A DNA stretch of 64,000 nucleotides from the NCBI GenBank assembly GCA_965637545.1, contig OZ281497.1, positions 14,384,001 to 14,448,000 on the forward strand, in the 5' to 3' direction. Shown here piece after piece: positions 17,101 to 20,100 of this stretch (position 1 is the first letter of the stretch; every line of letters starts with the position of its first letter). Below the pieces are notes generated by a model, which did not search any database, was not told the DNA's origin, and saw nothing but the letters and a program-made list of their open reading frames with translations. The DNA comes from Phallusia mammillata. Taxonomy: Eukaryota. A program made the translations under genes and the position numbers.

Positions 17101-20100
17101 TTACAGGAAGGTAATGCAACGATGCGCAGAATGGTGAGCTTTTGTCTGGCGCTCTGCAATTACGGCAATTTCTTCCTTATCTCTTTGTGGGCGAGTGTGG
17201 ACAAAGCGACAATAACATATAATTGCGCGATCTCCAGACACAATTTCCATGCCGCGAATCGCTCGTGGATAACCCGGGGCGTTTATAGAGAAGTGCAGCC
17301 TGCTAGTTTGTGGTAACCGGCGCTTCCACAAAAGACAAACGTAAACAGCGGATTTTAGTTGGACCCTGCATTCAGGGAACTGCAGCTTTGTGATGGAGAG
17401 CTTTACAAATAAACGCGTAGCGCCCGGGAGCTTTTAGCATTGTTGTGTGTTTATCGTCGATGCTGATCATGACATCAAACACGTAGGCACATTAAATCAT
17501 AAGCCACCCTTGACATTGTGTTTGCGTTTAAACACATGCTACGAGTTCGGTCTATGAACAGTTATTTGGGCTTTTATTTAGAAAGCTTTACATGTTCCTA
17601 TATCACTGTCTGGTATCAACGGGGGTAAAATGAAGTAAAGGTTTTTCAGGCCAGCGAGCTAATAAATTTCGGCGCCTTAAATTTTTGTGTAGGTTTGGTA
17701 CTGGTTGTATTACGACTCTTTTTTGGCACTATTTTAAATAATATACTGGACATAGTTTTGTTTACTTTATTTTGAGACCTACCCCAAAACCGTTTTGCGA
17801 CATTTTTCTCAGTCAAATTCCAACTAATATAATTTGAAATCTTCCCAGCAAAAAAAATGCCTTATATAATCTTTGATTACCAACGGGTAGGAATTCATAC
17901 CTACAGTTTATGAATTTATATTAAAAGCAGCAGTACAAAACGTTTACAAAATCTGCCTAAAACATCGTCGCTGGATGACATACAATCCATCACCGAGCAA
18001 ACCCCCTGTAAAGTAAACATTCGTGCATTATTGATGTCTGCCACGCCACTGAAGGCGGTGTAAGAGTAAAATCTTAAGCATGAGCTTTCTGTTTTGCAGG
18101 TTACCTCACCATCCACAGGAGCAACGACACGGACGTTGGGCGATATCACTGTGCAGGACACAACCACTATGGCACTATCTTCTCCACCGATGCACGGTTG
18201 TATGTGCGAGGTAGGCTTGCACTTTAATTAAAACTTTGCGACTTTAAATCGGCTTGTTTTTTGACAGCTAAAAGTAAAGTTTGATTTAACGTGGCGTTCG
18301 ATAACAGACAAATTTTGTAATAAATCAGATCATGTTTACACAATTTATCCTTTAGTTCTATGATTGATTCAATAGATGGTGGTTTCGATATTACAAAATT
18401 ATCTTTCAAAACACGACTGCCGTGTGGTATAAGTCAGTATCACATAAGTTTTGGGGTTATCCATGATGTGTATTCTAGTCATAACTTGTTTTTCCTAATT
18501 GCTCTGTTTGGACTTCAGCCCGAGATGGTAAGTATGTGTTAGTGCTCAATATTTCATACGTCGTCCCTACAACTCCACACATACGTTAAACTCTGCATAT
18601 ATTGCCTGCATTAGACATTTTTATACCTCTGTTCTGTGAAGCGTACAAAAGTAATCGATTATAAATCTTTGTCGCGTGCAAGATTTATTTGATTTGACCT
18701 GTTGACAAGAATAAATTGGCGAATTTATTCTAACCTTTAGTTGTATTGTCTGACATCATTTAACAGCTAAATGATGTTGCGCAAATCAAGCCATATTTGT
18801 GTCAAAAATGAAAAAAAAATTAAAAAAATTCTTAATTGAAAAAAAAAATGTTTTTTATTCAATTGTCCATTAGGTATATGAGTTGTGAAAAATAAATATG
18901 TTGTCAAATAACAGAATATGTTCTGTTCAGTTCGCCGAATGCATCCACGCTTTTCCATCAAACCTCACCAAAGCTACGAAATTCTGCAGAATGCGGATCT
19001 CAATATTACTTGTGTTGCGGTTGGCGCACCCATGCCCCACGTCCGGTGGCAAAAAGGTACGTGGCTCAACATTGAAAAATAAAGTAAATAAAATGCATAG
19101 AAACAATGCAAAGAATATGAACAATTTGTAAGAAAAATCATATTGTTTCTTCCAGTCTATTTTCCTAATCGATATCATCCTTTTACGCCGTTCAAAAGAT
19201 TTAGTTTTACACACCGCTTCAGCTTTAGGGCTTACTGTAAAACATTAAAGTTCAAAACCATCTTATCCGCTATAAGTTTCGTAAAATTTACTCAGTTTCG
19301 ATTTTGCATCAGCACAACATGACTTGGCTGTCAAAAATTATGAATCACCATTTTTTGTGATAAGTTGATATCGCAAATACACAAAAACTTCCATCTATAA
19401 TATGCAGCAGGCATCAAAAATTTATGTGTGGATTTTTTTAGAAACCTCTGATGGCTTCGTTGATGTTTTGCCGAAACCTTCGTCGTCGTTCGTGGTCGGT
19501 CGTCTCGTGCTACCCCTAAAAAACATACAGGAATCAGCAAACTACACTTGCATTGCCAGCTCCCTAATGAGCACAATCAACATCACAACCCAGGTCCATG
19601 TAAAGGCTTTGCCAAAGGTACAATCATAATAGAAAGTAGAAACAGCAAAGATTGGTTTTGAACGTAAAAAGTACCTTTTGAGTACGCCAAAAAAATCAAT
19701 ATTTGTACTTTCCGATGTTTCAATTAGTGCCGTGCCATTTTCTTCGGTGTGTCGAATTAAATTGGACCTTTTCGTTCTGCCCGCCATGGTACAAATTAAG
19801 CCGAGTCACTTGTATTGAGTAACTGTGACAAAATAAACGCCCCGTCTTTTGTCTGTCTTCAGCCGCCGGTCGACGTGAGACGAATGGACAACGGAGAATC
19901 GTCCAATTCACTGTCAGTGACCTGGAGATCAGGGGACCTAGAACCGGTGAACAGTTACACAGTCTACTACCGTGCATCGAAAGTTCGGTCAGCTTTTGAT
20001 TCTCTTTCTGGGATCTCTTCAACCAGGTGCGCTCACAAATGCGTTTAGCATCGATTTATACCAGTGTCTTTGTGCTGTGTCCCATTTTTAAAGCTTCTTT

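Follow-up and report, generated by a model that had tools for sequence, protein, structure and literature searches.

The microexons meA and meB of the vertebrate LAR-type (type IIa) receptor tyrosine phosphatases (LAR-RPTPs) PTPdelta, PTPsigma and LAR set the postsynaptic partners of these proteins, and disturbance of meB alters mouse behaviour (PMC13080001, PMC12075705). The meB exon has 12 bases and codes a peptide that makes the linker that joins domains Ig2 and Ig3 flexible and selects ligands (PMC8711739; PMC10883964). A nine-base element, CCCGAGATG, occupies the corresponding place in the LAR-type phosphatase gene of the tunicate Phallusia mammillata, within the stretch of 64,000 nucleotides analysed here (contig OZ281497.1, positions 14,384,001 to 14,448,000; referred to below as the window, with positions counted from its first letter). 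The element lies inside the 720-base intron that separates the last Ig2 exon (..LYVR) from the first Ig3 exon (VRRMHPRF..). The evidence presented below gives a probability of about 75% that evolution has maintained bases 18519-18527 as a genuine cassette microexon of this gene, used in a minor form of its transcript.

In mouse Ptprd the inclusion of meB is dependent on UCUCU/UGC enhancers that lie upstream and serve Srsf11/Srrm4 (PMC13080001). In the general design of microexons a UGC stands between the branch point and the AG, the branch point reads CUAAY, the donor is strong and there is an AG-free zone (10.1101/2024.09.17.613571; 10.1101/2021.02.24.432780). CUAAY is the motif enriched at exons dependent on eMIC, whose splicing programme is bilaterian-wide, and the conservation of neural microexons drops fast outside vertebrates, even in amphioxus (10.1101/2021.02.24.432780). 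No description of an meB-like exon in tunicates or other invertebrates was found in the literature searched. The vertebrate sequences sampled for the present comparison read LYVR-ELRE-VRRV or LYVR-DQRE-VRRV at the Ig2-Ig3 junction; the protostome and other invertebrate representatives sampled have no insert there, single representatives being unable to exclude other isoforms.

Splicing signals and reading frame of the nine-base element

A sequence-only reading of this DNA had described a branch-point-like CCTAAT followed by TGC, a short pyrimidine tract, CAG, nine bases and GTAAGT, and all of these are read exactly as claimed at 18494-18533 (individual positions in Table 1). Its placement of the element between LYVR and VRR is equally sound: this is the Ig2-Ig3 junction, Ala-Arg-Asp (ARD) is in frame, and the borders of the flanking exons are confirmed by spliced contigs. 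The likeness it had drawn to published microexon signals is borne out by the UGC between branch point and AG, the CUAAY branch point and the strong donor. CCTAAT carries the sole YTRAY motif within 70 bases 5' of the element, and 38 bases free of AG separate the CAG at 18516-18518 from the nearest AG upstream. By translation, skipping of the nine bases yields LYVR-V-RRM and their inclusion LYVR-ARD-V-RRM, in frame and stop-free.

The donor at 18528 scores 5.85, compared to 4.59 and 5.10 for the two real donors flanking it. The element is the best of 25 in-frame, stop-free AG..GT candidates in the 720-base intron, the next independent candidate having a donor score of -0.32. A second AG, localized within GAG (18523-18524) six bases past the main one, is an alternative acceptor in a weaker context; used with the same donor (score 5.85) it would define a three-base exon, ATG at 18525-18527, that inserts a single Asp in frame. 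Nowhere else in the window is the Ig2-Ig3 intron repeated, and its opposite strand carries no open frame.

A search of both strands of the 64-kb window for a pyrimidine tract of >=0.7 followed by AG, 3-30 bases and GTAAGT gave one match per strand, the match on the + strand being the nine-base element at 18519-18527. Dinucleotide-preserving shuffles of the intron produced a comparable candidate in 44 of 20,000 cases (0.22%), the full signature with UGC and branch-point motif in 4 of 20,000 (0.02%) and a nine-base candidate in 4 of 10,000 (0.04%), figures that are only rough because the candidate thresholds were chosen after the candidate had been seen. As a positive control, the same scan ranks an annotated nine-base exon of Ciona intestinalis, described in the next section, clearly at the top of its intron (4.68 versus -1.91).

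Nine-base elements in other tunicates

A protein-representative search that used the D1 phosphatase exon as query, and a subsequent word search, led to the Ciona proteins. The Ciona intestinalis cluster holds RefSeq isoforms of 1963, 1960, 1953 and 1950 residues. Isoforms X1 (XP_026690262), X3 (XP_026690265) and X5 (XP_026690266) read IYVK-VRPK-RLAYPRFSI at the Ig2-Ig3 junction, and X2, X4 and others read IYVK-E-RLAYPRFSI, a difference of three residues exactly at this junction. The insert corresponds to a nine-base exon, TTCGTCCAA (L002:10177-10185 of GCA_018327825.2), inside a 694-base intron; it is preceded by CTAAT, TGC (14 bases 5' of the exon), a T-tract and AG, and followed by GTAAGT.

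The Ciona exon shares with the Phallusia element the intron, phase 1, the length of nine bases, a central CGN codon for Arg, CTAAT and GTAAGT. The two lie at a similar distance from the Ig2 exon (258 bases in Ciona, 308 bases in the window). They differ in their peptides, Ciona inserting VRP and also changing the next residue from E to K, while ARD leaves the next Val of the Phallusia protein unchanged. They differ also in that the Ciona exon sits in annotated mRNAs and the Phallusia element is known from genomic sequence alone. As separate observations, the Ciona isoforms show no variation at the meA position, and further differences among them are a cassette of 10 residues at the N-terminus (AAIYQQPGQY) and the skipping of an FN3 exon.

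A nearer tunicate, called here relative B, is represented by a 33-kb animal contig in metagenome assemblies. It was reached from P0030/P0153, an open frame on animal contigs whose short protein has 92% identity to the D1 exon. The Ig3 exons of relative B are 76% and 71% identical in amino acids to those of the window, much closer than the exons of Ciona. Its Ig2-Ig3 intron has 2149 bases and contains an in-frame candidate, AACGTGTCG (L010:8077-8085), coding K-R-V. This candidate has a tract that is 0.76 pyrimidine and a TCG/GTGAGT donor; upstream of it lie TGC, at distances of 3 and 28 bases, and TTAAC, at 40 bases. In relative B the phosphatase D1 exon that is continuous in the window (29137-29439) is broken by ~160 bases (L004:10001-10597 / L005); the break reads as an open frame, meaning an intron present there and absent in the window species, or the reverse.

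The elements of Phallusia, Ciona and relative B thus have in common nine bases in phase 1, a central CGN codon for Arg, a UGC between branch point and AG and a GTRAGT donor. Their AG-free zones extend over 38-49 bases and they lie 258-326 bases past the Ig2 exon. Such nine-base elements are present in three of the four tunicate introns examined. Conservation in relatives, which the sequence-only reading had set as a test that could refute the element, came out in its favour, with the annotated nine-base exon of Ciona and the matching candidate of relative B. Between species the introns showed no similarity above shuffles in either local or global alignment and, because the introns cannot be aligned, homology of the exons is not arguable from their flanks.

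The fourth intron belongs to Clavelina lepadiformis. Its best in-frame candidate is a 12-base segment, AGAGGAATGGAG (L003:21471-21482), coding E-R-N-G; the donor is GTAAAG, the tract is weak and UGC is absent. Its peptide has Arg second, as the other tunicate elements have. Being weak and unannotated, it is not counted as a counterpart. A word search with an 81-residue junction peptide had one match, in genomic sequence, to the Ig3 exon of an unrelated animal rich in AT (P0001/L001). A profile search built from Ciona X1 and pieces of the window exons had a poor profile; it yielded Clavelina, and the protein of the window organism was absent.

Splice junctions in RNA contigs

Splicing of the gene was followed in assembled contigs from four RNA-like runs of four studies, aligned to 13700-19680. 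None of these runs is registered as RNA, but all four are spliced and therefore hold RNA. In each of them position 18210 is joined straight to 18931 with GT..AG borders, removing 720 bases and leaving no letters between, and position 19056 is joined to 19442. The occurrence of the skip joint in four of four samples makes the skipped form the major one, inclusion being at most minor there. Low-depth unspliced contigs span 18181-18748. In the deepest run (depth ~380) this unspliced branch accounts for a contig break at 18210, and the skip contig is continuous across the start of the Ig3 exon. A contig break at 18210 in run X7 was considered as the branch of an included form and rejected: a low-depth unspliced contig explains the break and the skip contig is intact at the start of Ig3. 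Scans of metagenome contigs gave 0 matches to the inclusion junction and also 0 to the skip junction used as control, and so carry no information on inclusion. No meA-like exon is present in the RNA contigs of the four runs across 13339-18099, the upstream Ig2 exon being joined straight to 18100 in all of them.

A probable minor-form microexon and its alternatives

In most cells the 720-base intron would be excised whole, so that the protein reads LYVR-V-RRM. A minority of transcripts, most likely in neurons, would have the nine bases recognised as an exon. Because ordinary exon definition needs more than nine bases, their recognition should rest on three signals: the near-perfect donor G/GTAAGT, the consensus branch point CUAAU, and the UGC between branch point and AG. 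The latter is a putative site for the eMIC domain of Srrm234/SRRM3/4, which promotes the use of microexons in other animals. Inclusion would place Ala-Arg-Asp in the short Ig2-Ig3 linker, lengthening it by three residues and adding a basic-acidic pair at the spot where vertebrate meB (ELRE/DQRE) loosens the linker and switches synaptic ligands; by analogy the tunicate insert might act similarly. We infer that the exon is included in P. mammillata, that its use is restricted to the nervous system and dependent on SRRM, and that inclusion may affect ligand binding. The altered linker geometry and the different ligands that the sequence-only reading had suggested are speculative.

Several observations weigh against this explanation. 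Inclusion of 18519-18527 is found in none of the spliced contigs of the four RNA-like runs. The RNA junction check that the sequence-only reading had asked for accordingly came out in part, with the skip junction found and the inclusion junction not, though contigs drop minor forms; because contig assembly loses minor nine-base variants, the absence of inclusion is not established. For the Ciona isoforms the source is automated RefSeq modelling. At the peptide level the three elements diverge (ARD, VRP and KRV) and have Arg alone in common. Clavelina lepadiformis has no annotated insert, no clean nine-base counterpart and no intron candidate above the thresholds. UCUC is absent from the 70 bases 5' of the UGC, in the window species and Ciona alike.

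The last of these points leads to the alternative that survives best, although it is judged unlikely: that the microexon is real and either not neuron-specific or not SRRM/eMIC-dependent, being used in another tissue or stage or through other factors, with an incidental UGC. The RNA-like runs carry no tissue information that would speak against such use. A chance UGC within ~30 bases is common and is here not accompanied by UCUC, yet the UGC falls between branch point and AG in all three tunicates. The branch point is just 20 bases from the exon, compared to the long distance typical of vertebrate SRRM4 targets; on the other hand the microexons that this presynaptic organiser gene has in vertebrates are neuronal, and the eMIC programme is bilaterian-wide.

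It is much less probable that the element is a conserved non-coding feature of the intron, a decoy or a site for stepwise splicing whose nine bases are seldom or never kept in mRNA. Such a role would agree with the skipped mRNA being alone in the four runs and with a 3' splice site closely trailed by a strong 5' splice site. It would not need a length that is a multiple of three, the lack of stops and a central Arg codon, which are found in three of three species; stepwise removal is needless in an intron of just 720 bases, and annotated Ciona mRNAs keep the nine bases. A chance pseudo-exon without function, resembling those of Ciona and relative B by coincidence, would fit the unseen inclusion, the divergent peptides, the lack of a Clavelina counterpart and the post hoc thresholds, but is the least credible possibility when shuffled tunicate introns yield a nine-base candidate at a rate of 0.04-0.17% per intron, and one with a central CG in 0 of 10,000 shuffles of every intron shuffled, against three of four real introns with the elements 258-326 bases past the Ig2 exon.

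A maintained microexon of the minor form is thus the preferred explanation. The nine-base exon may share descent with meB, or may have arisen separately at a favoured spot. That the ancestor shared by tunicates and vertebrates already had an alternatively spliced Ig2-Ig3 linker microexon, with Arg and a UGC-type enhancer, is a tentative proposal, held at somewhat less than even odds.

Organisation of the phosphatase gene and other features of the window

The + strand of the window carries one compact gene of the type IIa receptor tyrosine phosphatases (LAR/PTPsigma/PTPdelta type), whose features are listed in Table 1. The exon preceding the 720-base intron aligns to Ig2 of tunicate and vertebrate LAR-RPTPs, and its borders (18100-18210) coincide with joints in the spliced contigs of the four runs. 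The exon following it matches Ig3 of PTPsigma and PTPdelta with an E value of ~1e-9 in a search of PDB sequences. From ~19860 to 32925 the exons are collinear with full-length Ciona, Clavelina and vertebrate proteins, comprising FN3 domains, one transmembrane segment and two phosphatase domains. Both the Ig2-Ig3 junction of the family (..YV[RK] / [VIE]RR..P.FS) and its three N-terminal Ig domains are present in the window gene. The closest full-length relatives are the proteins of Clavelina lepadiformis, Ciona intestinalis and Ciona savignyi (~48-53% identity), which stand clearly above vertebrate or protostome LAR proteins in summed bits. On this ground alone the animal would most likely be a tunicate outside those genera. 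The window gene is its sole phosphatase gene of the LAR type (type IIa).

Table 1. Features of the phosphatase gene and of the nine-base element (positions in the window; a slash marks an exon border).
Feature	Position	Strand	Basis or remark
Ig1 exons	near 2776-3165	+	alignment to LAR-RPTPs
Ig2 exons	~13174-13338 and 18100-18210	+	alignment to LAR-RPTPs
Last Ig2 exon	18100..18210	+	ends CGG TTG TAT GTG CGA G, ..RLYVR plus first codon base, phase 1
Branch-point-like CCTAAT (CUAAU)	18494-18499	+	branch A at 18498, 20 bases 5' of exon
UGC (TGC)	18500-18502	+	between branch point and AG, 16 bases 5' of exon
Pyrimidine-rich tract (0.71 Y) and 3' splice site CAG	18503..18518	+	sequence; tract to 18515, CAG 18516-18518
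Candidate cassette microexon CCCGAGATG	18519-18527	+	G/CC CGA GAT G/TT, Ala-Arg-Asp, next Val kept
5' splice site G/GTAAGT	18528-18533	+	donor score 5.85
First Ig3 exon	18931..19056	+	starts TT CGC CGA ATG, V RRMHPRF..; borders are joints in spliced contigs
Second Ig3 exon	19442-19617	+	alignment
FN3 exons	~19860 to 27000	+	alignment
Transmembrane segment	near 28300	+	alignment
Two tandem phosphatase domains	29116-32925	+	alignment

Other short candidates occur in the same gene. At 12008-12010, in the long Ig1-Ig2 intron, the three bases TGT have a good pyrimidine tract and a GTGAGT donor and are the sole further match of the strict pattern on the + strand. A second nine-base candidate, CCCCAAAAG, is located at 28499-28507 (context 28440-28513) between the transmembrane exon (end 28407) and the next exon (start 28638); with CTAAT and TGC upstream and GTGAGT downstream, it would insert Pro-Lys-Ser after ..CVKR. 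A three-residue insert, SPG, occupies this juxtamembrane position in one Ciona intestinalis sequence, P0281 (ILYTR-SPG-RKNAK).

At 51016-52770 the phosphatase gene is duplicated in part. A portion of the D1 exon with its intron (29294-29683, 85% identical) abuts directly there on the 3' end of the gene and the sequence downstream of it (32908-34077, 97% identical), and 34372-34500 (86% identical) comes next. The arrangement resembles a fragmented segmental copy rather than another gene. Farther downstream on the + strand, past the phosphatase gene, open frames at 56116-57557 and 60183-63900 resemble, by eye only, a sugar/MFS-type transporter, with long hydrophobic frames, and a TPR-rich, acidic NASP-like protein.

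Comparison with meB and with SRRM-dependent microexons

Retention of a nine-base exon where meB lies, in at least three lineages of tunicates, would mean that splicing has long been regulated at the Ig2-Ig3 linker in this sister group of the vertebrates. Since automated RefSeq models of the Ciona isoforms were already on record, the finding extends a known kind rather than adding a new one. If the ancestral origin of the microexon is true, the meB half of the LAR-RPTP 'synaptic splice code' is older than vertebrates and than the known meB-dependent ligands, and the exon is among the few neural microexons conserved outside vertebrates. Its dissection would then be possible in the small and fully mapped larval nervous system of ascidians. 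With a single-copy gene and a small nervous system, the role of the microexon, its regulator and its ligands are more simply testable in tunicates than in mice.

The sequence-only reading had called the element equivalent to meB. This stands for its location, in the same intron as vertebrate meB, and by position, judged from the alignments, the nine-base exon is its tunicate counterpart; the element is however no copy, having nine bases against 12, with only an Arg and an acidic residue to recall ELRE/DQRE. The meB peptide has four residues (ELRE in PTPdelta and PTPsigma, DQRE in LAR) and the window element three (ARD). Inclusion of meB, its neuronal regulation and its switching of ligands (IL1RAP, IL1RAPL1, Slitrk, SALM3/5, TrkC) are proven, while the window element is known by sequence only. 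Both are nevertheless frame-preserving, have a cassette position between ..LYVR and VRR in the Ig2-Ig3 linker, belong to an orthologous gene family and end in Arg followed by an acidic residue (..RE in meB, ..RD in the window).

In comparison with the microexons that depend on SRRM3/4 (eMIC), the window element lacks a UCUC-rich partner, the site of SRSF11, and its branch point is not unusually distant from the AG. It resembles them in its length, which is within 3-27 bases and preserves the frame, in the UGC between branch point and AG, in CUAAY, in its AG-free zone and in a donor that outscores those of the neighbouring exons.

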